From assembly GCA_002269645.1 (NCBI GenBank), contig NIVC01000611.1, positions 62,001-126,000 of the forward strand: 64,000 bases of DNA, given 5' to 3'. The position numbers were made by a program, and so were the translations under genes. Each line of letters begins with the position of its first letter. Positions within the stretch are counted from its first letter, which is position 1. This DNA is from Macrostomum lignano (Eukaryota). The notes under the pieces were generated by a model. The model did no database searches and was not told where the DNA came from. It saw only the letters and a list, made by a program, of their open reading frames with translations. Below, one piece after another: positions 9,459-64,000 of this stretch.

Positions 9459-12400
9459 CTACAACCAGCGGTCTTCGGCATTTTCATCCGGCAGGGTCTT
9501 TGCCTTAGACGAGTACAACAGCGGCTGAGGCTGCGGCTGCTCAGCGTCAAAGGTGCTCAATAGGGTCAGGGTATAGTTGATGAAGGCGGCGTGGCGCAGA
9601 ATCTTCACGTGCTCGGCGCCGTCAATTACAAAGCTGCGAACCTGCGGGCGACGTGACCAAGCAAATGGGTAGGTGCAAGCATCTGGGTAGAGGCTGTAGG
9701 CTACTCAAACATTTGGGTAGATAGGGTGGAGGCTAAACAAGCATCTGGGTAGACAGGGTGGAGGCTACTCAAGCATCTGGGTATATAGGCTGTAGGCTAC
9801 TCAAGCATCTGGGTATAAAGACTGTAAGCTACTCAAGCATCTGGGTAGATAGGTGGAGGCTACTCAAGCATCTGGGTAGATAGGTGGAGGCTACTCAAGC
9901 ATCTGGGTAGACAAGGTGGAGGCTACTTGAGCATCTGGGTAGATAGATAGGCTGTAGGCTACTCAAGCATCTGGGTATATAGGCTGTAAGCTACTCAAGC
10001 ACCTGGGTATCCCGATGGGAAAAGGGCAGCCTCTAATTTTTACCCTAGCCTCAAACGCAGCCTCGAATGAACCTCAAAGTGGATTTTTTGAGGCTGGTTT
10101 GATGCTAGCCTCAAAAATAATCTTTAACCTCAAAAGAGATTGTATTTGATGCTGGATTTGAGGCTAGAGTAGAGGTTCAAATTAGAGTCTGAGATAGAGG
10201 CTAGATTCGAGGCTGGATTAGAGGCTTTTTTGAGCCTGGATTTGACGATTAATTTAGAGGCTAAATTCAAGGCTGGATTAGAGGCTTTTTTTGAGCCTGG
10301 ATTCGACGTTTAATTTAGAGGCTAAATTCGAGGCTGGATTAGAGGCTTTATTTGAGCCTGGATTTGACGTTTAATTTAGAGGCTAAATTCGAGGCTAGAT
10401 TAGAGGCTGGATTAGAGACTGAATTAGAGGCTGTATTAGAGACTGAATTAGAGGCTGGATTAGAGACTGGATTCGAGGCTGGATTAGAGACTGGATTCCA
10501 GGCTGGATTAGAGACTGGATTTGAGGCTCAATTAGAGGCTGGATTAGAGGCTGGATTAGAGACTGGATTCGAGGCTAAACTTGAGGCTGGATTAGAGACT
10601 GGATTCGAGGCTAAATTTGAGGCTGGATTAGAGGCTGGATTTGAGGCTAAATTTGAGGCTGTATTAGAGACTGGGTTAGAGGCTGGAATATCCCGCTGGG
10701 ACCCGTCGCCTGATGTCGTGCGCCTGATGGAGGATCCTTTCTGCAGCGACGATGAATCGGACGCTGCTGCATACACAGTCGGCACCGACAAAATCCTGGG
10801 CACGTGCCTTGTGAGCAGAACGCATATTGCTCTGATGCCGTTCTCGCAGCTGAATTATTCGTAGGCTAGTGGTCTTTTTATCTTTCTCGCTTTCTTTCTC
10901 CGTTTTTCTTTCTCACTTTTGAGACAATTAAAAAGTTATCAAGGTTTGGAGGTCTACTGTGTAAGTAGTGCCAAATTATATGAAAATTCACTACTCCAAT
11001 TCCCAACATGTATTCACTGAAGTGCTGAAGTGAAGTGAAGTGAACTGAAGTGAACTGAACTGAAGTGAAGAAAGATACAGGATTTTCTGTCTTATATGAA
11101 GGCTAGAAGTAATGTTTTCCATAGACATAACTGTCATGAGCCCTAGAGTCCTAGGCTAAAGTATAAACTCAAGTAAAAAAATACAAAAGAAACTAGAGAT
11201 GTTTGTCAGTGGATTTATGACACATCCCTCGTAAAAAGAAACGTGGTAGAGTTGCTCGCCTAATTATAATGCACAGGCCTGGATTATTGTGCACTGCGTA
11301 GATTATTGGGCACAGGCCCGGATTATTGAGCATAGGCCCGGATTATTGTGCAGTGCCCGGATTATTGGATTGTATTCTACCGGTTTATTAGTGCATTAAA
11401 TTCACATGTTTATAACATTTTTTACAAGGTTATTTCGTAGTCTTTGTGCTGTCATCTCCCCTTAAGCTGCCAATATTTTGTACCGATAAACTAAACTGCT
11501 CAACTGTGCTCAAATTCTGATCTATTTGATCTTATTGATTTTGAGTCCTTAATTCACTTTTTATTGTAAATATACTGTCTTTGCTCCAATAACTGCATGC
11601 TTAATTACTGCTGTTACTGTTATTACTGTTCTCAATGAGCGCGGCCGTTGCTGTGCTGTACAAATTTTTGATTCTTCCATTTTTTTAGTAAATTTTACCT
11701 TACCAGCCAGATCCCCAGTTGCTGGGTCAGCCTCTCATTGACAATCTCGAAATCGCCAGCCTTTAATCCAGCCTCTAACTGAGCATCAAATCGCCAGCCT
11801 CTAATTCAGCCTCTAATTCAGCCTCTAACTGAGCATCAAATCGCCAGCCTCTAATTGAGCCTCTAATTGAGCCTCTAATTGAGCCTCTAACTGAGCATCA
11901 AATCGCCAGCCTCTAATTGAGCCTCTAATTCAGCCTCTAATTCAGCCTCTAACTAAGCGTCAAATCGCCAGCCTCTAATTGAGCCTCTAATTCAGCCTCT
12001 AATTCAGCCTCTAACTGAGCATCAAATCGCCAGCCTCTAATTGAGCCTCTAATTCAGCCTCTAACTGAGCATCAAATCGCCAGCCTCTAATTGAGCCTCT
12101 AACTGAGCATCAAATCGCCAGCCTCTAATTGAGCCTCTAATTCAGCCTCTAATTCAGCCTCTAACTGAGCATCAAATCGCCAGCCTCTAATTGAGCCTCT
12201 AATTCAGCCTCTAACTGAGCATCAAATCGCCAGCCTCTAATTGAGCCTCTAATTCAGCCTCTAACTGAGCATCAAATCGCCAGCCTCTAATTGAGCCTCT
12301 AATTCAGCCTCTAACTGAGCATCAAATCGCCAGCCTCTAATTGAGCCTCTAATTGAGCCTCTAATTCAGCCTCTAACTGAGCATTAAATCGCCAGCCTCT

Positions 12401-30500: not shown

Positions 30501-32418
30501 TCGGAGATGTGAGTAACACGTTAATTAAGGCCCATATGATGACCTAATTGCTACTCTTGACCATTTGGTATGATGATCTGCGTCTACCACCATTCACAGT
30601 GTCTGAGGCCTCAATTAAGTGTAGACCATTTCAGGATTCAGTCCGGATGTTTTAGGGGATTTTTCCTCTGGAATTGCTTCTAGTGAGAGTTTCCTAGTTT
30701 GTAAATACCTTAGAAATTTAGGTTTTTGGGGTTTCTTTGTCTTGTTTTTTCTCGCTTGGATTTCCCTGGCTTGGATTTCTTTTTTTAGATTTCCCTCCAT
30801 ACATGCGCAACCTCCAAAATTTCGGTCGGCCGTGCGACTTAGTTTCAACAAAAATGCGACGTAGTTTTTGGCGAAAAATGCGACTTACATGTAAAAAACC
30901 CTAAAGCAAAATTAACGCAACTTTGGGTAAACGGCAGGAGTATTTATAACTGTCTTATTAAGCCAAAATGCCTCGTCAGCTACTTAGTTTACTACTTGGT
31001 TGTTTTTTCGGTGGGCATTTTTGCGACTTCCTTGGTTGGCCGCCAAATCGGTCGGCCGGATCGGCCGACTGTTGCGCATGTATGTTTCCCTCTTTGGATT
31101 CCAATGTCCTAGATTTCCCTCTCTAAATTTCCGTCTTGGATTTCCCTGTATTTGATTCCCCTGTCTTGGATTCCCCTGTCTTGGATTCCCCTGTCTTGGA
31201 TTTCCCTGTACAGATGTGCATGAGAAAAATCCAATACAAACTGCCAGGTCGCACCGGCCGCAAAGCCGACTTCTCCTGCTCGGATCGGCTATTCGCTCTC
31301 AACTGCCGTATGAGCGCCTTCCACACGCCCGAAGAGTTTTTTCTGGACCATCGCCCCGTGCCGCTGGCCCAGTGCCGCATGCCGGAGTTCGATCCCACAG
31401 TTCTGCTTAATGCAAAAAATGCCCACGCAGATTGCTCGCCTACAGACGAGTTGCGTCAGTTTTTGCTTGACGATTCTTCTAGTAGCAAGTCGGCTGCCCT
31501 GCTTGTGCTGCTCGTGGGCTACCCGGCCAGCGGCAAGTCCACTCTGTGCGCTCAAATCAGCCGCTTGCTGGCCGGCCAGGGCGCTGCGGGTCCAGCTGTC
31601 TGCGTTGTGAATCGGGACCGGCTGGGCACCTGGCAGAAGTGCGTGCAGTCTGCCGAAACTGCGCTCAAGTCTGCTTCTGGCAGAGCCATTGTGCTGGTGA
31701 GAGTTCATGGGGCTTGATAATTGGGGGTCAGTAGCCCAACAACAGGATCTGGGAGGCTGGCCCAGCAACTGGGGATCTGGGAGGCTGGCCCAGCAACTGA
31801 GGATCTGGGAGGCTGGCCCAGCAACTGAGGATCTGGGAGGCTGGCGCAGCAACTGAGGATCTGGGAGGCTGGCCCAGCAACTGAGGATCTGGGAGGCTGG
31901 TTCAGCAACTGAGGATCTGGGAGGCTGGTCCAGCAACTGAGGATCTGGGAGGCTGGCCCAGCAACTGAGGATCTGGGAGGCTGGCCCAGCAACTGAGGAT
32001 CTGGGAGGCTGGCCCAGCAACTGAGGATCTGGGAGTGCAGTCCCACGCCAACCCCAACCCGCAGGTGGACAACACCAGCGTGGACCAGGAGAGCCGGCAG
32101 CGCTATATCGAGTGCGCCCGCCGTTGCAAAGCCGGGGCCGCCTGCCTGGTGATGCAGTGCAGCCTGGCCCAGTGCCTGCACAACGAGCGGTACCGCCGCA
32201 TTGTGGAAGAGGAGGCCGTGGACAATCCAGCGGACGGGCCGCCCAGCAAGAAGCGACGCGAGCCGGTGAGCGAGATGGTGTTCAACCAGATGCGGGCCAA
32301 GTTCGTTGAGCCCAGCCTGTCCGAAGGATTTGATCGCATTTTGAAGGTGCCGTTTGTGCCGAGCTTTCAAGTGGATGAGCACAGGAGACTGTACTGTCAG
32401 TATCTGATGGAGAAATAG
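27597..32418 (+). CDS. PNKP: Bifunctional polynucleotide 5'-kinase/3'-phosphatase, 4 exons
   Basis: Exons 27597-28460, 29603-29798, 31248-31696, 32065-32418 (phases 0,1,0). N-terminal FHA (VIGR...CSRQQ), HAD motif FDMDGT, FSNQ, RKPCTGMW, FYVGDAAGR, DFSCSDRLFALN, TPEEFF, P-loop GYPASGKS, VDNT, PSLSEGF. Confidence 0.93.
28506..28582 (+). ncRNA. Box C/D snoRNA, SNORD76-like, copy 1 (PNKP intron 1)
   Basis: AGCC/GGCT terminal stem; box C ATGATGA at 28511; guide AATTGCTACTC + D' TTGA; C' ATGATGA; ACCACC; box D CTGA at 28575. Confidence 0.8.
28622..28703 (+). ncRNA. Box C/D snoRNA, SNORD76-like, copy 2 (PNKP intron 1)
   Basis: GGCC/GGCC stem; C ATGATGA 28629; AATTGCTACTCTTGA; C' ATGATGA; CTACCACCA; D CTGA 28696. 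Confidence 0.85.
28825..29175. repeat. 24-bp CGCCCTTCACCGCCTTCCGAAAAT minisatellite between snoRNA copies 2 and 3
   Basis: Tandem units. Confidence 0.9.
29221..29304 (+). ncRNA. Box C/D snoRNA, SNORD76-like, copy 3 (PNKP intron 1)
   Basis: TGGCC/GGCCA stem; C 29229; same guide, D' and C'; D CTGA 29296. Confidence 0.85.
29410..29493 (+). ncRNA. Box C/D snoRNA, SNORD76-like, copy 4 (degenerate boxes)
   Basis: AGGCC/GGCCT stem; C 29418; guide intact; C' changed to ATGACGA and box D changed to CTAA (29485), so possibly a pseudogene. Confidence 0.65.
29870..30330. repeat. 15-bp TTCCCCGTATGGGAT minisatellite in PNKP intron 2
   Basis: Tandem units; source of GISPY/GNPIR pseudo-ORFs. Confidence 0.95.
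30392..30469 (+). ncRNA. Box C/D snoRNA, SNORD76-like, copy 5 (PNKP intron 2)
   Basis: GGCC/GGCC stem; C 30399; AATTGCTACTCTTGA; C' ATGATGA; D CTGA 30462. Confidence 0.85.
30528..30611 (+). ncRNA. Box C/D snoRNA, SNORD76-like, copy 6 (PNKP intron 2)
   Basis: Extended stem TTAATTAAGGCC / GGCCTCAATTAA; C 30536; same guide; D CTGA 30603. Confidence 0.85.
31745..32035. repeat. 28-bp GATCTGGGAGGCTGGCCCAGCAACTGAG minisatellite filling PNKP intron 3
   Basis: Same unit occurs at 40720-41460, 52395-52590 and 53180-54300. Confidence 0.95.
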
Positions 32419-34209: not shown

Positions 34210-34921
34210 GAGGCTGTTTTTAGGAAGAAACATTTGATTGAGGATTTGATATGAGCGTATCGTACCTATGTTTTCTGATTGAAGTGATCAATCAAATGTA
34301 ATTATCTGCCGCCATTCATTATCCCAGTTCATAAAACACATGGGGTTCCATAAATCCTAAATCTTAAATCCCCAAATCATAAAACCACACAGGATTCCAA
34401 AAAATCCTCAAATCCTAAACCACATGAAATCCAATAAAAATCCCCAAGTCAAAAGTCACATGAGATCCCATAAAAATCCCTAAATCATAGGTCACATGGC
34501 ATCCCATAAAAATCCAAATCATAAATCACATTTAATCTCAAAAAAATCCCTAAATCACAAATCACAGAGATCCCACAATAGTCACAAGTTGATCGCATTA
34601 TTGCTTGCTTACTTCTTGGACAATATTTTTGCTTCCAATGTTCTTAAATTCGCCTCTAGCATTTATGCTTACGAGTATACATGTAAATTAATAGGATGCA
34701 GTTTTGAAGGCCATTGTGTAATGGTATTGATTATTCTATCTGGCAAATAAATCAATTTTGTAACAATTGTTGTGATGAATTTTGATCTCTTGAGTCATCG
34801 GCTATTGAGACGTATCGCACTATGCATTTTTCTATCTTTTTGGATTTATATAGGATGCTTAATATTTCTCACCTGTTCACTTTTCAATTTTACTATTAAT
34901 AACTTTTTCTGGCAAACTTCC

Positions 34922-35461
34922 ATGGCTCCCTCAGCTGCTTCGCCTGCCAGAGGCTGCCTTGGCCCCGTAATGAAAACACGCAGATCACGGGCTACTATGC
35001 ATACTACTGGCGCCGGCTGTAGCAGTAGTATGATCCGCGTCAGCGGTTTACCGCCAGGAGCAAGCGCGGCAGATCTGGAGCGGGCCTTCTCCAGATTCGG
35101 CCGCGTCCTGTCAGTCTGGTCGCCAACAGTCGCTGTCGTCATCGTTGAAATGTCCGATCATTGCGCCGCACTGGAAGCTGTCGATCGGCTGGACGATTCG
35201 CCTCTGTGCGGCGCTCGGGCTCGGCTCGAACTCGCGGCTCATTGTCGCGGCCTGGTTGAGTCCTGCTACGATTGCGGCGCCGAAGGTCATTTTGCCTATG
35301 GCTGTCCCTGGGCGGGCGCGGCTGGCCCGGCTGTTGAGCAGTTGGCCACTGAGATGAGCAGGCAGCTGGTGCTGCACTCTGGTGCTGCCCCTGTGACTGC
35401 ACGCTTAGCTAGTGGCTTCCAACAAGAACCATATTGGAATGTGACAGGATGTAAAACATAA
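34922..35461 (+). CDS. Divergent single-exon RRM + CCHC zinc-knuckle protein, SRSF3/7 paralog without RS domain
   Basis: IRVSGLPPGASAADLERAFSRFGRVLSVW...LDDSPLCGARARLEL and CYDCGAEGHFAYGC align with the neighbouring SR gene. AATAAA signals at ~35463 and ~35482. Confidence 0.7.
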   Translation: MAPSAASPARGCLGPVMKTRRSRATMHTTGAGCSSSMIRVSGLPPGASAADLERAFSRFGRVLSVWSPTVAVVIVEMSDHCAALEAVDRLDDSPLCGARARLELAAHCRGLVESCYDCGAEGHFAYGCPWAGAAGPAVEQLATEMSRQLVLHSGAAPVTARLASGFQQEPYWNVTGCKT

Positions 35462-36774
35462 AATAAATGTGTACTGGGCCAAATAAAAGTAAGCGATTTT
35501 ATTTGATACTCTACAAACAGTAGAAATATAGGGAAAATACGTTAAATTATAAAAAATGATTTCAATAGCCACTTTGTCAACCACGATCTGTCAGTTCAGT
35601 TCATTATAATAATTAGGTTTTACGTCCTGTTGGCTGTTGCTACATTCCAGTGGTCCTTGGTAGGTTACTCACTCACTGAGTTAAATCAACTACTACTCAG
35701 TTCCAGCTCAGTAGTCAGAGGCACAGTTTTACAGAGACCAAATAGTACATTTAGAGTCTACAACAAAATATTTTCTACTGTTCAATTTTTAAGCTAGATT
35801 TAGCGGTGTTCTTTTATTAATGGAAAGTCACGTGACTGATTTGTTATCTGTGGCAAGAATAGCCAACACAATGATGTAATATGTACATTGCAGCACTAGG
35901 CGGAGTGTGCGAGAATGAGCAATGAAATTAAGGGGATGTGTGGGAGAAAACAGACAAAAAGCCAGCGAATAAGTAAGTCGAGTGTCTACTTTTTAAAAAA
36001 TTCATTTGATTCAGTTTTGTCACGTGATAGCGAAGCTTGATCACGTGCTTCTCTTCGTTTATCTAGGACAAGAAAGTAGGAATTGTACTAGATTTCAAGT
36101 AAAATGCGGATTAGGTTTGATAAGTATGTTTCGATACATATCGGCTATCCTAAACTGGTGTTTTTTAGCTTTAGTAATTTTGCTCACTGCTATTTGCTAG
36201 CCACAAAAAATTCCCCGGAACTTCGAACTGCGACAAGCAGGTAATTATTACCCTATTAATCTGCGATGCATTTTACCCACGCTCTTATGGCATCATCCTC
36301 TCTTTAGTCGTGTTTTAAGGTAGAATTTTTATTATCGTTAATGCGTAACTTTACTGGCTGGAGACTAGACCTGCTAATTGGATTTTGGCCTTTTGTGAAA
36401 ACACTTGCTCGTACGTATGTCTGTGTGTACAATTAGCCATAATCCTTATGAATTAAGAATTCAATATTTGTAGCGCTTTGCCAAATTCAAGTTTGATTTC
36501 AAGGATTAAAAGTTTCTGGTTGATCCTGTTATCGAACGGCATTTCTATGTTGCGTCCGCCCGTTTCTTATAAAGTTAATAAAAAGTACTCGTGACATCTG
36601 CTTTGATTTCGGTTGTTTGAGTTATTATTTACACTTGCAATTGCCATACCCCAAGGGTAGCCTAAATAGCATTAAATATTCTGAATAGTGTGACTGGTAA
36701 TAAATGCTAGATAATACATGTAGCCTCATTTTCTGGGGACATGATCTATGACCATTTCGGAGTCGGCCCACAAC

Positions 36775-37310
36775 CCATCCATGACCCTTTCCTCACCGGA
36801 TCCATGACCCTTCCTTCACCGGATCCATGCCCCTTCCCTCACCGGATCCATGACCTTTCCTTCACCGGATCCATGACCCTTCCTTCACCGGATCTATGAC
36901 CCTTCCTTCACCGGATCCATGACCCTTCCCTCACCGGATCCATGACCCTTCCCTCACCGGATCCATGACCCTTCCCTCACCGGATCCATGACCCTTCCCT
37001 CACCGGATCCATGCCCCTTCCCTCACCGGATCCATGACCTTTCCTTCACCGGATCCATGACCCTTCCTTCACCGGATCCATGACCCTTCCCTCACCGGAT
37101 CCATGACCCTTCCTTCACCGGATCCATGACCCTTCCCTCACCGGATCCATGACCCTTCCCTCACCGGATCCATGACCCTTCCCTCACCGGATCCATGACC
37201 CTTCCCTTACCGGATCTATGACCCTTCCTTCACCGGATCCATGACCCTTCCTTACCGGATCCATGACCCTTTCCTTACCGGATCCATGACCCTTCCCTCA
37301 CCGGATCCAA
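36775..37310. repeat. 23-bp CCGGATCCATGACCCTTCCCTCA minisatellite in the probable 5'UTR intron of the SR gene
   Basis: Tandem units between a donor (CAG|GTAATT, 36241) and an acceptor (CACGCAG, 37342). Confidence 0.9.
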
Positions 37311-37357
37311 TACCTTTTCCTCACGCATCGCCGCCCACGCAGAGCCGATCAGCCGCA

Positions 37358-40197
37358 ATGTCCGGCATGCGCCTTGATTGCAAAATCTACGTCGGCGAGT
37401 TGCCGCGCGACGCCAGCGAGAGCGAACTGGAGCGCGCCTTCAAGTCGTTCGGCCGGGTCCGCCAGGTGTGGATCGCCCGCAATCCGCCCGGCTTTGCCTT
37501 CATTGAAATGGACGATCCGCGCGACGCCGAGGACGCCGTCCGCGATCTGGACGGGTCCACCATTTGCGGCGTCCGGGCCCGCGTGGAAATGTCCAGCGGC
37601 CGCTCCAGGCCCAAGGGATTCGACCGTGGCGGTCGGGACCGCGGCGGCCCAAGGCGCGGCTTCGATCCCAACGACCGGTGCTACGACTGCGGCGAGAAGG
37701 GCCACTACGCCTACAACTGCCCGAGGAAGCGGGGTGGCGGCGGCGGCGGTCGCGGAGGTCGAAGCCGGAGCCGCAGTCGCAGCCGGAGTAACGATAGGGA
37801 CAGGCGGGGCAGGTGAGGATTTATTGCACTGTTTGCGCTAATGACGGCTGAGCAATGACTGTTGCAGGTGTTTCTGTTTGTATTTTGCCTGACTCCAGTT
37901 CTCAGTGTGCATCGGCGGGGGGCGTAGTGATTTCGCCTCTGGCTTTTATTCCCCCTCTCCCTACCCTCCCTCGCCCCTCTCCCCACCCTCCCCCCTCACC
38001 CACCCTCACTTGTCCCCTGTCCCTACCCTCCCTCTCCCCCACCCCCTACCCTTCCTCTCTCTCTCGTTTCCACCTTCTTACCTTCTGCGTCCACCTAGAC
38101 GAGAACTATTCTATCAATTTTTGTTCTATTGAGTTCTTTTACTCTAAACCAAGCTGCACATCTGAAGGCGCATTACCTGTTTTTATCTAATGTTTCCTGT
38201 TTTAAGTCATTATTACATATACTACTAAGTTTCCGTAAAAGTGAGCAGTAGTATGTCTAACAAGTTGACGCGCAATATCTAAATGTTATTTTTTATCAAA
38301 ACAGAAAATTTATCGCAAACATGAGTCCTAACTGTCTAATTGATTGATTCAAAGTTGGGGTGCTTAAATTTGTTACTGACTGTTTAATTTGTTCCAACAA
38401 ACAAATGTTCCAGGATCTTCTACTGCAACAAACTTCTTCACCAGGCTCAGCCCAGTTTTGCGCGCTGCACAGACCAATTAGAGAAAGACTTGAGCTTCGA
38501 CTACTTGAGAATAGGAGTTTCTGCTACTTAGAGTAGTACAAAATAACTAGCTGTCTTTCCCTGTAAAATTCAATGCATTTATTTTTTAAGAATTCCTAAT
38601 CTTTTTTGAGGAACAGAATTGCATTTAGACACAAAAAGTAAAAAGTCCCTTTGCTTCATTCTCGGGGCTGAGTCTAAAATCTAATGTACACTCAGCCCCG
38701 AGTGTAGAGATATGACAAATCTCGAAACTGGGGTTATCCGTAACTTTTTCCGATATGTAGCGTAACTAACTTTATCGAAGAAAAATTTACACTTATTTGC
38801 CACGGCTGCAGTCGTAGATATTTTAGTCTAACCTGCACATCTGTAGCATATAATAGCTCGTACTAGGCAGGCGGGTTTTTCAGGATACAAGTGTATTGCC
38901 GATATGTAGCGTTAGTAACTTTATCAAGGCAAAATTTACATTGTTGCTGACAAAATACGAGTACTAGGCCAGGTGGATGTAAGTCGTTTGCCGATATGTA
39001 GCGTAGAAAACTTAATCAAGCCAAAATTTACAGTTTATTAAAACTAATAATACTAAGACAAGATTTTTGTCCGATATGTAGCGCATTTTTGCAATCAAAG
39101 TTAAGGATAAGCCAAAGAGTTTTATTCAAGCTAAATGTCTAAGCATAAGAATAGGCAGGCTTAAGTTAGAGTCAGCGACCTAGCGTCAGCTCGTGACTGC
39201 AGCAGCATCACCAGCATCTTCAGCAGCAGCAGCAGCAGCAGTGCATCTCTGCGCAACAATGCTCTCCCCGGGGTCCCTCACAGCCAGTTTGATCTGCCTC
39301 TAATTGCTTTGCGAATACATAGTGGGGAGATTCTGCACGTTGTCAGGCTGCTGCTCAGCTTCTTCAGCTGGCTGCTCGCGCCCGCTGTGATTGGCTGTGT
39401 TTAATCTCTGCCCGATCGCGCGCTGACAGCCCGTTCGGTCAGTTCAGTTATGCCAATCACTGATTGGCATGTTGTTTTAAATTATTAATTATTTATCATA
39501 TTCAAGTAAACTCACGCATTGAGAATAGATATGTATATAGGTAAACTTGTACTGCAGTCAACTGTTGACATTCGATCTGGTTTTCTCCGAATACAGCTGG
39601 ATTATATTTGGCTAAAAAATCATCCATCGCCATCACTATCTCGCCATCAATGTCATTTTTAGGCGCAGCCCGTCCTACTCGGATCGCAGTCGCAGTCGCT
39701 CACCGCCTCCGCGAAGGCGCAGGTAATTGTTTGACGATATGTATCGAAGTTAACTTTACAAACTGCTTAAATTAAGCTAGATCTTTTATGCAGCCGATAT
39801 GTATCGAAAGTAAAAGTAGAAAACTGGTTAAGTAGGTTAAGGCTACTCATTTTCTATAAAGCCGATATGTTTCGAAAGTAAATTAAAAAAACTGTTAAGT
39901 AGGTTGAAGCTACTAATTTTTTTAGTCCGATATGTATCGAAAGTCTATGTAAGTGTTAACTAGGTCAAACTTACTAAATTTTCTATAAAGCCGATATGTA
40001 TCGAAAGTAATCGTGAAAGTGTTACAGAAAATTTAGCTTATTTTCTGTGCATGTATCGAAAGCAATTACTCTCAATATCGTGAAGTTGTTGCTATATAAT
40101 AAGGTCTTATACAACGCCACGCCAAGTTCTGAAATTTGCTGTTTCCCTTTAAACCGTCCATTTCAGGTCTCGCAGCGGCAGCAGCAACTCCCGCTAA
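37358..40197 (+). CDS. SRSF7: SRSF7/SRSF3 (9G8/RBP1)-like splicing factor: RRM + zinc knuckle + RS domain, 3 coding exons
   Basis: Exons 37358-37812, 39663-39722, 40167-40197 (phases 2,2). KIYVGEL (RNP2), [30 protein letters not shown] (RNP1), [14 protein letters not shown] knuckle, RS repeats. A non-coding 5' exon probably ends at 36240. Confidence 0.88.
38750..40065 (+). promoter_or_regulatory. Two clusters of the conserved motif CCGATATGTA(G/T)CG in SR-gene introns
   Basis: CCGATATGTAGCG at 38750, 38899, 38991, 39071; (C)CGATATGT(A/T)TCGAA at 39735, 39794, 39862, 39927, 39991 and a partial copy at 40051. Flanks are diverged. Regulatory function is inference. Confidence 0.5.
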
Positions 40198-40719
40198 ATT
40201 CGAAGTCAATGTTGGGATGAAATGTTGGGATTTATAAGAAGTGTCAGTGACTAAGCTGGCGGACTTGTGAATTTTAAGTGTTGTTTCCTAAACTGCTCTG
40301 CTTTCTGCATCCCCGAGTCTGTCCTATTCTCCTGTTTCCTTGTCAAAGTTTGAACAAAACTCTTTTTAACAGCCATCTTTAATCTTTAACTGTCGTTGCG
40401 TCCTAATGTAACTTTGGCTCAGTTGAATCAATAAGCAGGCCCTGTCACTCTTGTTATCGATTTTTATTAGCAATATTCTTACTTAAGGGTTTCTTAACTA
40501 TTAAACTAGGGAAAGTGCATCGGTTTGACCTTGGCTGGCACTGATTGACATTCGCGTTGAAAATATTAAATACACTCTGACTGCAGGCTTGCACTGCCAA
40601 TTTATCCACTAGCACCTTAGCCTTGGCTGGTTAAATGCTGATTGCAATAAATTTTGAGCACTTCCATTTCTTCTTAAATGTACTTACTGAATGCAGTCTC
40701 GAAGCTTTATTCAGACTGC

Positions 40720-41460
40720 TCACCTCAGTTGCTGGGCAGCTGCTGGGCCTCTGGCACGCTCCCAGATCTTCAGTTGCTGCGCCAGCCTCCCAGATCCTCA
40801 GTTGCTGCGCCAGCCTCCCAGATCCTCAGTTGCTGGGCCAGCCTCCCAGATCCTCAGTTGCTGGGCCAGCCTCCCAGATCCTCAGTTGCTGGGCAGCTGC
40901 TGGGCCTCTGGCACGCTCCCAGATCTTCAGTTGCTGGGCCAGCCTCCCGGATCCTCAGTTGCTGCGCCAGCCTCCCAGATCCTCAGTTGCTGGGCCAGCC
41001 TCCCATATCCTCAGTTGCTGGACCAGCCTGCCATATCCTCAGTTGCTGGGCCAGCCTGCCAGATCCTCAGTTGCTGGGCCAGCCTCCCAGATCCTCAGTT
41101 GCTGGGCCAGCCTCCCAGATCCTCAGTTGCTGGACCAGCCTCTCAGATCCTTAGTTGCTGCGCCAGCCTCCCAAATCCTCAGTTGCTTGGCCAGCCTCCC
41201 AGATCCTCAGTTGCTGGACCAGCCTCCCAGATCCTCAGTTGCTGGGCCAGCCTCCCAAATCCTCAGTTGCTTGGCCAGCCTCCCAGATCTTCAGTTGCTG
41301 GACCAGCCTCCCAGATCCTCAGTTGCTGGGCCAGCCTCCCAGATCCTCAGTTGCTGGGCCAGCCTCCCAGATCCTCAGTTGCTGGGCCAGCCTCCCAAAT
41401 CCTCAGTTGCTGGGCCAGCCTCCTAGTGTCAGTTGCTGAGCCAGCCTCCCAGTGTCAGTT
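40720..41460. repeat. 28-bp CTCAGTTGCTGGGCCAGCCTCCCAGATC minisatellite
   Basis: Reverse complement of the PNKP intron 3 unit. Confidence 0.95.
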
Positions 41461-41514
41461 GCTGAGCGGGCCTCCCAGACCCCCGGTCCAGCTTAAGCCA
41501 GCATCACAGCACAG

Positions 41515-51690: not shown

Positions 51691-52394
51691 CATTTCATGG
51701 TAAGATTGAGTTGCATACATGTACTTATCAAGTCACCTGATTCTTTTAAAGTTATAGAATTCAAAATCCAGCCGAGCCTAATTATGTCGGATTTTATTTG
51801 GGGTTTTTTGCTTTCGACCTGTGCACGATGAGCATTCAACTTGCTTAGAAATATTATTTTAACACGCAATTTTTGTTTACACTTATTATAGCCATTGCCT
51901 CATATGCATATTATATCTATTTATTTACGAGTTAAAGCAAAAATACTAATAAAAATCGCATGCTTATGACCTAAAAATAGTGTGTAGTGCAGATATTGTT
52001 TTATTATTATTCGTAAAATTTTCGAATAAATATATATTTGCTCCTGCTTAGCGCGCGTACGAGTTTTACTCAGTAAATACTTATTAATCTTGAACTTTAG
52101 CTCACTGCTTGATTCGTGGATTTAATTATTATTTATGCTATACACTGCAAATATAATTCTGCTGAAAACATAATTGTGTGTAGAATTTTTTCCACTGTGT
52201 AATGTACAGGTACGAAAGTAGAAATGCAGATCGCAGGCTGAAGATATCCTTTGCACTTTTTTCTCCGCAATTTGAATTTTCTTGTATGAACTTTTAATTA
52301 AGGTGAATTTAGTGAGTGTTTCTGCTCACCTGATATTTCTCGGGTAAATTTTATCCTTTTTGTGACATTTCCTTGTCCAACTTCAACATACTGC

Positions 52395-54300
52395 AGCACC
52401 AGCCTCCCAGATCCTCAGTTGCTGGGCCAGCCTCTCAGATCCTCAGTTGCTGGACCATGCAGTGTCCTCCCAGAGTGTCAGTTGTTGGGCCAGCCTCCCA
52501 GAGTGTCAGTTGTTGGGCCAGCCTCCCAGAGTGTCAGTTGTTGGGCCAGCCTCCCAGAGTGTCAGTTGTTGGGCCAGCTTCCCAGATCCCCAGTTAATCA
52601 ACCCAAGCCCAATACCCAGCAGTCTGTCTCCCTATCCAACCACCAGTCATTCTTATCACCTCGTTATAAAACTGTGTGCAGCAAAATAGCTTTGCCATTG
52701 CAACTATTTTAGATGACAAATCTTATTAACATTTATTATTACAGTTTATTACATTTTCCTCCAATCAATTTTTTTTAAATAGAAATGTTTAAAAACAATA
52801 TTCAGTTATTCTTATACTACTCAATGCAATTAAGCTTGTTAATGTTTTCATTGTGTTTAACAAGAGCACAAAAAGCCAGAAAAACAGCATGCAGTCATTT
52901 TATGAAGTGCTTATTGATCTACTCATTGAAACTGAATCTATTGAGTCTATTCACTTCCATCAATTTATTGACTTCGGTAAAAATCTTGCTGACATGCAGG
53001 TAAGTCATGTTAATTAATTGCCGATTTGACGATGTAGTCACAAATTTAGAAGGGTTCTGCGTCTTGAGAGCTGTGCTGAGTTGCAAAAATAATCAGCGTG
53101 TCTGCTTTTGTGCTTTCATAATGGTTTGGTTATTGATCCGGCATGATCGAAATTTATGAGAGTAGCAGTGGCATAGCAACTGTGGATCTGGGAGGCTGGC
53201 CCAGCTAGTGAGGATCTGGGAGGCTGGCGCAGCAACTGAGGATCTGGGAGGCTGGCCCAGCAACTGAGGATCTGGGAGGCTGGTCCAGCAACTGAGGATA
53301 TGGGAGGCTGGTCCAGCAACTGAGGATCTGGGAGGCTGGCGCAGCAACTGAGGATCTGGGAGGCTGGCGCAGCAACTGAGGATCTGGGAGGCTGGCCCAG
53401 CAACTGAAGATCTGGGAGCGTGCCAGAGGCCCAGCAGCTGCCCAGCAACTGAGGATCTGGGAGGCTGGTCCAGCAACTGAGGATCTGGGAGGCTGGCCCA
53501 GCAACTGAGGATCTGGGAGGCTGGCCGAGCAACTGAGGATCTGGGAGGCTGGCCCAGCAACTGGGGATCTGGGAGGCTGGCCCAGCAACTGAGGATCTGG
53601 GAGGCTGGCCTAGCAACTAAGGATCTGGGAGGCTGGCGCAGCAACTGAGGATCTGGGAGGCTGGCGCAGCAACTGAGGATCTGGGAGGCTAGCCCAGCAA
53701 CTGAGGATCTGGGATGCTGGCCCAGCAACTGAGGATCTGGGAGGCTGGCCCAGCAACTGACACTCTGGGATACTGGCCCAGCAACTGACACTCTGGGATA
53801 CTGGCCCAGCAACTGAGGATCTGGGATACTGGCCCAGCATCTGAGGATCTGGGAGGCTGGCCCAGCAACTGAGGATCTGGGATACTGGCCCAGCAACTGA
53901 GGATCTGGGAGGCTGGCGCAGCAACTGAGGATCTGGGATACTGGCCCAGCAACTAAGGATTTGGGAGGCTGGCCCAGCAACTGAGGATTTGGGAGGCTGG
54001 CCCAGCAACTGACACTCTGGGATACTGGCCCAGCAACTGACACTCTGGGATACTGGCCCAGCAACTGACACTCTGGGATACTGGCCCAGCAACTGACACT
54101 CTGGGATACTGGCCCAGCAACTGACACTCTGGGATACTGGCCCAGCATCTGAGGATCTGGGATACTGGCCCAGCAACTGAGGATCTGGGATACTGGCCCA
54201 GCATCTGAGGATCTGGGAGGCTGACCCAGCAACTGACACTCTGGGAGACTGGCCCAACAACTGACACTCTGGGAGGCTGGACCAGCAACTGAGGATCTCT
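52395..54300. repeat. Two oppositely oriented blocks of the 28-bp minisatellite (52395-52590 and 53180-54300)
   Basis: Same unit family as 31745-32035 and 40720-41460. Confidence 0.9.
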
Positions 54301-54792
54301 CTACAGGAATCAAAGCTTGCTGAGACTAACATCTACCTGTTAATGTGCTGCATGTACAGGTATACAGCGCTTCTCCGAGAATCTAGAAGCAATCAAAACT
54401 CACAGATCAGTGCGCAAAAGTTAGCAGGTTAAAAATCAATATTTCAGTCATAGCATTATTGCAGAATACTGTACGTGAGCATGCTAGGAACTAAGGGCTG
54501 GATCTAGTAGTCCTACTAAAAGCAGGTAGATGTGCTAATTTGAAGTTATCTTAAATATTTCAATTAAAAATGTTAAACAATATGGAATTATGAAACAAGC
54601 AGTGCAAAGTCCTGTATCCAAGGTAAGCAAACGGTTGCTAAGCGACGAGTTTCTTTTTCACTTTTTTCAAAATCAATTTAGCGAAATCTTCAAAGGAAGC
54701 ATCTTTATAGTAGCATTGAGAAAACCAAGAGGGTAAACAGCGAGTAAACTATGACAGCTTAAAACTCGTCAGCTAATTCGTTGAAAAAATTT

Positions 54793-63095: not shown

Positions 63096-63745
63096 CACTC
63101 AGCAACAGTCAAAAGTTCCACCCACCAAGCGGGATGAAAATTTTCTCACTTATTGCGACACATTCTCACTCACAATTCAACCCTCAAGTTACGCAACTAA
63201 GCCGCGGCGAGGAAGGGGAAGTTGACTGTATCAATGACTTGTAATAAATGTCAGTCGCACAAAATCATAAAAAAATTTAATGCAATATTCAGTTAGAATC
63301 GCGATGCTTAATAACGCGTGTGGGATCCCCTCGCACGCAGAAATGCGCGATTCTGCGGGGCATCCCCAGGATGAGGCGGCGCAGAAAGTCCTGGAGAAGC
63401 TGCTGCCAAGCGTTTTCAATGGCATGACGCAGCTCCGCAACATTCTGTGGTGGATTCTCTTTTCGAATGCTGCGTTTTAGAAGTTTCAGACATGCTCGAT
63501 GGGATTCATGTTTGGGGACCGGGAAGGCCATGCAGCGCAGAGTGCGCAGCTGTAGCTGTTCTTTCAATTGACTAACATACAGCATCGGCTCGGTGTGGCG
63601 GCGCGTTGTCCTCCTGGACCATTAAGCAGACAAAAGCCGCCCCCAAGTGGCAATAAGATTTATTCGTGTCGTAAGTTGCGTCACTCGAAATAAGTGAAAA
63701 AATCATCTCACTTAGTGGGGTGGAACTTTTGACTGTTGTTGAGTA
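63096..63745 (-). mobile_element. Internally deleted Tc1/mariner element with a pseudogenised transposase 3' fragment
   Basis: TA TSD at 63094-95 and 63746-47; TIR CACTCAGCAACAGTCAAAAGTTCCACCC / GGGTGGAACTTTTGACTGTTGTTGAGTA. Minus-strand remnants QEDNAPPHRA, WPSRSPNMNPIEHV* and LLKRSIRKENPPQNVAELRHAIENAWQQL..., broken by stops and frameshifts. Confidence 0.88.
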
Positions 63746-64000
63746 TACTCTTTTGCCATAGTTTGTCTGCGCAGTGTCACTTGAACTTAGTGCGGCAGCC
63801 AAAATTCAGGGAATCCTATTTGTTTCACCAGGAACCGACACTGGTCCCGCACCACCCCACCTCCCCTACAAGTTGAGGCCCAAGCCTTCGAGCCTTCGAG
63901 ACTCGGGAGTTTTTGTGAGTAAACCCTTCCTTGTAGGGAGGTTTTGTGGGGACGAAAAATAACAGAAGAGTAATTTTTAGTTGAGAGTTAGGGAGAATAA

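Follow-up and report, generated by a model that had tools for sequence, protein, structure and literature searches.

In the 64,000-nucleotide stretch of Macrostomum lignano contig NIVC01000611.1 analysed here (the window), a plus-strand gene for an SRSF7-like SR protein carries, in each of the two introns between its coding exons, an array of tandem units built around a common short core, and the same core is found once more, inverted, near the gene's 5' end. This core of 12-18 nt has been protected over the long term in all three places, one of them inverted. The arrays themselves are very probably old tandem repeats of variable copy number, from a family specific to the lineage of this gene, whereas the nature of the protection is much less certain; I slightly favour, tentatively, the reading that the core would be the recognition site of a sequence-specific protein acting on DNA.

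The gene product combines an RRM, a CCHC zinc knuckle and an RS domain, and its best protein match is PAA79883 (BOX15_Mlig026908g3), with 99% identity. This annotated protein is the translation of the spliced gene model, which includes the 60-nt RS exon proposed in the first-pass annotation of this DNA. The contig piece that was fetched from NIVC01000611.1 (locus L001) is identical to window positions 27343-50197. The coding exons and the copies of the repeat are arranged as follows (a slash marks a splice junction).

37358-37812, plus strand: coding exon 1, covering the RRM, the CCHC zinc knuckle and the first part of the RS domain; ATG at 37358, acceptor at 37343, donor ggcag/GTGAGG.
38734-39112, plus strand: upstream array in intron 1, four units, with cores CCGATATGTAGCG at 38750-38762, 38899-38911, 38991-39003 and 39071-39083.
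39663-39722, plus strand: exon 2, 60 nt for 20 residues, supported by PAA79883; its donor cag/GTAATT is off the species consensus GTRAG.
39723-40066, plus strand: downstream array in intron 2, with cores at 39734-39746, 39794-39806, 39862-39874, 39927-39939 and 39991-40003, and a partial core at 40051-40062.
40167-40197, plus strand: exon 3, the final coding exon, with TAA as its stop.
36129-36146, minus strand: inverted solo copy (core 36132-36144), which reads AGCCGATATGTATCGAAA and then a second box, CTTATCAA.
39527-39548, plus strand: decayed unit copy, AGATATGTATAT with flank, 81% identical to 39736-39756 (family D9), both core CpGs lost.

With at most one mismatch, CCGATATGTAKCG is matched 10 times in the window where 0.04 matches are expected, and none of 100 shuffled sequences reached 10; all matches fall within the SRSF7-like gene, over a span of 3.9 kb, nine of them intronic and one inverted near the 5' end. 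Every copy listed in the first-pass annotation was recovered, including the partial one at 40051, and the arrays bracket the 60-nt exon at 39663-39722 as it described; it had missed the inverted copy at 36129-36146, the decayed copy at 39527, the variation in copy number and the absence of the motif from a paralogue and from trematodes.

The two arrays differ in the make-up of their units. An upstream-type unit consists of the core CCGATATGTAGCG, a (T/A)ATC(G/A)A box some 20 nt later, AAAATTTACA and a tail, and in a second copy of the locus (L002) its full period is 91 nt; in the window both boxes are present in units 1-3, including the AAAATTTACA that had been noted after three of the units. 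The downstream cores read CCGATATGTATCG or a one-mismatch form of it, with ATGTATCGAAAG as the partial copy at 40051, and they follow each other at 60, 68, 65, 64 and 55 nt; the downstream-type unit recurs every 64-68 nt and contains the conserved stretch AG(C/T)CCGATATGTATCGAAAGT. Head-to-tail repetition is confirmed by Tandem Repeats Finder (period 68 nt, 3.3 copies, 75% matches), and the direct-repeat families D1-D6 show spacings of 60-68 nt and 80-149 nt. Common to all units is the 12-nt core CGATATGTAKCG, which contains a 5+5 inverted repeat (CGATA/TATCG) and two retained CpGs and which extends to a conserved stretch of up to 18-20 nt in the downstream type, while the remainder of the units, roughly 60-90 nt long in all, has diverged by roughly 20-35%.

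If the arrays were neutral, variation would be expected to be spread evenly along the unit, and this is not observed. Changes were counted along a minimum spanning tree that connects every unit found in three copies of the locus, with cores of up to 3 mismatches admitted; since units were found through the core at that same threshold, fully decayed units would escape the count. On the long, that is old, branches the 13-nt core changed 2 times in the upstream array against 21.4 expected (p = 2.1e-8) and 3 times in the downstream array against 23.5 expected (p = 2.4e-8), whereas on the short, recent branches the differences (1 vs. 3.2 upstream, 1 vs. 3.8 downstream) are not significant. An unbiased scan for the least-changed window of 13 columns returns exactly the core; under shuffling of columns, p is < 5e-5 when the scan is run on the window's four upstream units and 5e-5 when it is run on the downstream units from all three loci. 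The same scan detected no protected 13-column window in 11 other minisatellites of the window (p 0.06-1.0; units split with blastn-short); these control arrays are also far less diverged, with 0.02-0.17 changes per column per edge against 0.30-0.37 in the window-only sets of units. The earlier observation that cores are nearly invariant while spacers diverge, unlike in the homogeneous minisatellites nearby, is thereby borne out (p about 2e-8 for each array). The AGCG end is invariant in 17 of 17 upstream-type units, and the conserved stretch is sharply bounded, a pattern that matches a bound factor's footprint better than it does the gradient left by gene conversion.

Two further copies of the locus are present in the assembly, L002 (NIVC01003151) and L003 (NIVC01002006), with 97-100% identity to the window across exons, introns and flanks. 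This near-identity fits the known redundancy of the Mlig_3_7 assembly, which was made from the DV1 line with its extra chromosome copies (PMC5730564). The numbers of units are counted below.

Window: 4 upstream units, 5 downstream units.
L002: 8 upstream units, 6 downstream units.
L003: 5 upstream units, 10 downstream units.

The fourth upstream unit of the window is missing from L002, and recent units are identical from end to end, as in five 91-nt units of L002 and four 64-nt units of L003.

Tandem repeats that vary within genes and share a core are well known, from the hypervariable minisatellites of the type described by Jeffreys to intronic variable-number tandem repeats with a regulatory role, such as STin2 of SLC6A4. 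The arrays in M. lignano resemble these in their head-to-tail intronic units, their variable copy number, the short core common to otherwise differing arrays and the repeat-rich host, and they differ in that their units are long (60-90 nt) and old (20-35% diverged), with 12-18 nt sharply protected. Simple and tandem repeats make up 15% of the M. lignano genome (PMC5730564). Dozens of minisatellites lie in the window alone, and 5 of 18 families checked recur at two or more of its loci, 2 of these in both orientations, so that a repeat family at three places in one gene, once inverted, is not unusual here; repeat units do spread locally in this genome. To call the arrays an undescribed element system, as was suggested at first, is thus an overstatement, given that they are variable-copy tandem repeats in such a genome and are absent from the paralogue and from distant orthologues.

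This absence was observed at several levels. A profile search found no further member of the unit family elsewhere in the window or in the 21.6 kb around the closest paralogue, P0002 (76% identity, locus L004), which has an intron at the same position and contains neither motif nor unit. The trematode orthologues of Calicophoron (L005) and Trichobilharzia (L006) show no motif at up to 2 mismatches and no arrays in the gene. A pattern of two cores gave 0 matches in JGI metagenomes, and in the searchable literature the motif string turned up only in unrelated primers, not as an element. As it is lacking from the paralogue, from two trematode orthologues and from the rest of the window, the element appears specific to this gene lineage.

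These observations could be taken to mean that the arrays have no present function, being two old and decaying minisatellites derived from a locally scattered unit, with a core kept non-adaptively by ascertainment, by a lower mutability than that of the AT-rich, slippage-prone flanks, or by a role in amplification like that of the classical minisatellite core. Copy number is free to vary among near-identical loci, to the point that one upstream unit is missing in L002, the genome is rich in minisatellites whose families recur nearby in both orientations, the motif is missing from paralogue and orthologues, some copies are decayed or partial, and recent branches lack significant protection. I nevertheless regard this explanation as unlikely, as core changes on old branches are depleted about tenfold within sharp bounds, none of the 11 other arrays has a protected window, both CpGs of the core are retained, and ascertainment fails to explain why the flanks diverged by 20-35% while 12-13 adjacent columns did not.

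The inverted copy is informative with respect to the kind of constraint. It shares 18 of 18 nt with the consensus of the downstream array (AGCCGATATGTATCGAAA), its core shows no change in any of the three loci, and with its upstream-type second box, CTTATCAA, in addition to this downstream-type match it looks like the undivided ancestral unit. Since it keeps the same 18 nt despite diverged flanks, the constraint appears independent of the orientation of the transcript. It is located about 95 nt upstream of a candidate donor in the 5' untranslated region, cag/GTAATT (first intron base 36241). Two TCACGTGA E-boxes (36020, 36041) adjoin it, and CACGTG E-boxes at 35829, 36021 and 36042, three of the nine in the window, fall within 220 bp just upstream of it; this cluster (35829-36042) probably marks the promoter of the SR gene. 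The 5 nt that follow the inverted core (36124-36128 on the minus strand; L002 8888, L003 8800) read CATAC, AAACC and AATAC in the three loci, which are otherwise about 99% identical, and thus form a small mutational hot spot beside an invariant core.

The same 18 nt in an inverted copy, the imperfect palindrome of the core and the lack of RNA structure slightly favour an action on DNA. CGATA-TG-TA(T/G)CG is an imperfect palindrome as expected for a dimeric or multi-finger DNA-binding protein, and a palindromic CGATA-TG-TATCG DNA site, mentioned in the first-pass annotation among the alternatives, is close to what I would propose. A dimeric or multi-zinc-finger factor would bind this palindrome at one promoter-proximal and about ten intronic sites; the arrays would then be clusters of many copies of one binding site, acting as an intragenic enhancer or as a tethering or insulator-like module for the SRSF7-like gene, and unequal exchange would change their length as in other variable-copy tandem repeats. 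A cluster of DNA sites would be expected to have several copies of a motif of 12 bp or longer within some 1-4 kb and in either orientation, and here 10 copies, one of which is inverted, are spread over 3.9 kb. Splice-site-like sequences do not keep their position relative to the core across the upstream units.

Known examples of such clusters are the 12 Su(Hw) sites in the gypsy insulator of Drosophila and the CGATA clusters of BEAF-32, elements of the BEAF-32/DREF type being clustered CGATA sequences bound by a BED-finger factor. The arrays share with these about 10 conserved cores with variable AT-rich spacers within a few hundred bp, CGATA present twice in inverted orientation, and the occurrence in either orientation. 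They differ in that the spacing is set by tandem duplication; the likeness to CGATA sites is a possible lead, and a role as insulator or enhancer is putative. BEAF-32 is not known outside Drosophila, and no such factor is known from flatworms.

Several points weigh against this reading. The choice between DNA and RNA depends on one inverted copy and on indirect arguments; 12 almost invariant positions exceed what most transcription-factor sites would show; and the host gene encodes an SR protein, a class known for autoregulation at the RNA level through intronic elements. The position of the first downstream core, 12-13 nt after the non-consensus donor GTAATT, would suit an intronic splicing enhancer. 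Core protection is not significant on recent branches, 6 of the 39 units in the three loci have a variant core, and the motif is not essential to the gene family, as the paralogue and the trematode orthologues do without it. Finally, the units may belong to a dispersed repeat or transposon family.

The last of these points can be stated more fully as a mobile-element remnant, in which the units would derive from a small non-autonomous transposon, either as its terminal or subterminal repeats with binding sites for transposase or as head-to-tail concatemers, and the core would be recognised by the enzyme of the element. Short arrays of a single binding motif are typical of the subterminal regions of some DNA transposons, the unit is present at three separate places in 4 kb, once inverted, and the presence of DNA transposons is evident from a Tc1/mariner remnant elsewhere in the window. 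However, neither a transposase reading frame nor terminal inverted repeats or target-site duplications were seen around the arrays, the remaining 60 kb of the window and the 21.6 kb of L004 gave no further copies, and a conserved coding exon would have to sit inside the element, which makes this origin very unlikely. The Tc1/mariner remnant itself is a degenerate transposase at 63289-63800 on the minus strand, with the motifs DNAPPH and GMPRRI; its sole database relative is one short contig in the assembly of a public sequencing run.

The closest rival is an action on RNA, in which CCGAUAUGUAKCG would bind a regulator and serve as a repeated intronic enhancer or silencer, affecting the exon 2 donor, the retention of intron 1 or 2 or a poison exon, in the autoregulation of the SR protein. 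It owes this place to the SR host gene, to a core just after a weak donor and to arrays that bracket a GC-rich, stop-bearing block. All nine intronic copies are in sense orientation inside the SR gene. The first downstream core begins 12-13 nt into intron 2 (cag/GTAATTGTTTGA-CGATATG), behind the real donor cag/GTAATT, which is off GTRAG, and the same layout is repeated in one upstream unit lineage (gat/GTAAGTCGTTTGC-CGATATG), with GT 7-8 nt before the core; in unit 3 of the window, gat/GTAAGT stands 8 nt before it. In the other upstream units the GT at that site is lost (ACAAGT, GTAACT, ACAAGA). The block between the arrays has the best acceptor-like sites of the intron.

39190-39470, plus strand: GC-rich block between the arrays, within an intron 1 that is AT-rich elsewhere, candidate poison exon region; best intron acceptors at 39284 and 39368, donor-like sites at 39438 and 39541.

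Every candidate cassette of this block adds a stop in frame, at 39402 (TAA) or at 39301, and by this arrangement the block could be the counterpart of the poison exon of SRSF3 and SRSF7. Its similarity to the paralogue intron is weak (39282-39345 vs. L004 10842-10905, 68% identity, E = 0.03), and intron 1 as a whole is marginally similar to that intron, with one 65-nt match and 13 shared 14-mers against 1-8 in shuffles. A perfect palindrome of 21 nt at 39450-39470, ATGCCAATCACTGATTGGCAT, contains two CCAAT boxes in opposite orientation, and with a third ATTGG at 39390 there are three CCAAT/ATTGG in 80 nt, where the window has about 2 per kb.

An annotated model of 157 residues, P0121, has as its stop the TGA just inside intron 1, which suggests a form in which this intron is retained or cut short; for the splicing element it would thus be a sign of intron retention or intronic polyadenylation. 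An ATTAAA at 39037-39042, inside the upstream array, has the UGUA of three cores 35-290 nt upstream of it and a U-rich stretch behind it. From this arrangement, ATTAAA 39037 is possibly an intronic poly(A) site, which could explain the truncated P0121. UGUA by itself cannot account for 12 invariant positions.

The UGCAUG repeats downstream of fibronectin EIIIB are a repeated intronic splicing enhancer by a small regulated exon. SRSF3 and SRSF7, for their part, are autoregulated by way of poison exons and intron retention and bind conserved retained introns (PMC5737842), which would suit a splicing element in this gene. As in these systems, a repeated motif flanks a 60-nt exon, here of an SRSF7 homologue, the first copy follows a weak donor closely and a stop-bearing candidate exon lies between the arrays; in contrast to them, the core has 12-18 nt instead of sites of 4-7 nt, it is not GAYGAY, one copy is antisense and the paralogue is without the motif.

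Each of these differences counts against a splicing element. The inverted 5' copy keeps its 18 nt and would yet be antisense in RNA, and a stretch of 12-18 invariant nt exceeds what one RNA-binding protein would be expected to need. The motif known for SRSF7, GAYGAY, shows no enrichment, with one occurrence in both arrays together and 0 in intron 1, and this goes against the suggestion in the first-pass annotation that the copies are autoregulatory GAY sites. The pseudo-donor is not kept in most upstream units, tandem duplication by itself gives the intronic copies a shared orientation, and the paralogue has the intron position without the motif. On balance an RNA splicing element is possible, though doubtful.

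A further RNA-level explanation starts from the inverted copy. In genes of the Dscam type, a docking site and selector sequences form competing RNA pairings, and here, too, a single copy within a gene faces many intronic copies, all of the same sense, to which it is complementary, although there is no cluster of mutually exclusive exons and the variation of the core misfits a pairing constraint. If located in an outron or a 5' exon, the inverted copy would pair with the sense copies of the introns, loop the pre-mRNA and steer the choice of splice or trans-splice sites. One antisense copy is opposed to many sense copies, its complementarity to the downstream type is 18/18, and its predicted duplexes with the intronic copies reach -24 to -37 kcal/mol, where other segments of the introns give -19 +/- 5. 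The start of the annotated partial coding sequence coincides with the acceptor at 37343, which may fit a spliced-leader trans-spliced transcript and would be consistent with trans-splicing and a long outron; trans-splicing is reported for 30% of M. lignano genes (PMC8629364). The complementarity, however, follows from homology, and the model would require that 36129-36146 be transcribed on the plus strand. Upstream-type units would have a G-A mismatch, and AGCG is invariant in 17 such units though it lies beyond this mismatch, which makes RNA-RNA pairing an unlikely constraint. The variants of the core are not of the kind that G-U pairs tolerate, and beside the copies there is no mutually exclusive exon set, just the 60-nt exon and the candidate poison exon. 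I consider docking and selection highly improbable.

The first-pass annotation had also suggested that the cores could be an array of U1/U6 decoys and had described apparent compensatory stems in the upstream units; a related possibility is that of decoy micro-exons, yAG/CCGATATGTATCGAAA/GTAAAw, in the downstream units. Each of these units has an AG in front of the core and a GT after CGAAA, and T-rich and TACTAAY-like sequence is found upstream; the proposed hairpin can be formed by two of the four upstream units. Scores range from -4.1 to -0.2 at the AG sites (intron mean -5.4, standard deviation 4.7) and from -2.9 to 3.6 at the GT sites (intron mean -1.7, standard deviation 3.6), about one standard deviation above the intron background and well below the 8-12 of real donors. 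No annotated isoform contains a micro-exon. As a 5' splice site or U1 decoy the core was rejected, because CCG/ATATGT has AT at +1/+2 and is off GT[G/A]AG, with no candidate in a scan by donor position weights; nor does it fit a U12-type donor. GT[G/A]AG is the donor consensus of M. lignano (PMC8629364).

The stems fared no better. RNAalifold returns 0 pairs for the consensus of the units, the folding stability of single units does not differ significantly from shuffles (z -1.9 to +1.3), and the named hairpin pairs in 64% of cells where the structure slid by one column (-1) pairs in 61% with a higher covariation score. Rfam gave no match, for the whole window at gathering thresholds or for 35500-40700 in permissive E-value mode. 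Decoys and structured hairpins are therefore extremely unlikely explanations of a core that has no GT and fits neither GTRAG nor the U12 type, and decoy micro-exons, a related variant, are likewise improbable. An RNA device specific to this lineage and serving SR autoregulation, in which either docking-selector-like pairing of the inverted 5' copy with the intronic copies or an array of decoy micro-exons would govern how far introns are retained or the poison exon is used in a trans-spliced flatworm gene, and array length would tune the set-point, is in my estimate quite improbable. The findings do not amount to a new kind of splicing system; what the locus has is best described as a putative 'selected binding-site core' in the known form of a tandem repeat.

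Some other features of the locus and the window should be mentioned. A tandem paralogue without introns, at 34913-35461 on the plus strand, lies 1.9 kb upstream of the SR gene and has an RRM and a CCHC knuckle, with no RS domain; judging from these domains, it could be a regulator or competitor of the SR protein. The database model A0A1I8JHD3 fuses the SR gene with this paralogue. Intron 1 starts with a C-rich tract (37850-38130, repeats of the CCCTCCCC type) that is missing from L002. The upstream array is immediately preceded by some 100 nt (38646-38745) with 16-nt hairpin arms at 38661-38676 and 38687-38702, 94% complementary; this segment is present in the window and in L003, absent from L002, and looks like a small foldback insertion or deletion. 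Among the minisatellites, the 28-nt AGGATCTGGGAGGCTGGCCCAGCAACTG occurs in both orientations at four loci (31744-32035, 40759-41479, 52362-52712 and 53093-54332); other recurring families are a 29-mer (193/51275), a 32-mer (9676/12756), a 24-mer (10144, inverted at 11757) and a 27-mer (5550/8430).

The locus shows that some of the abundant intronic minisatellites of M. lignano carry selected sequence. If the core were without function, the case would be a warning that conserved cores between diverged spacers can arise inside ordinary tandem repeats in a repeat-rich genome. M. lignano is a regeneration model with working transgenesis (PMC5730564). If the core is a real binding site, this species would gain a defined cis-element of 12-18 nt, in at least 10 copies and with naturally varying array length, and the arrays would be a ready-made dosage series for studying the control of a splicing-factor gene.

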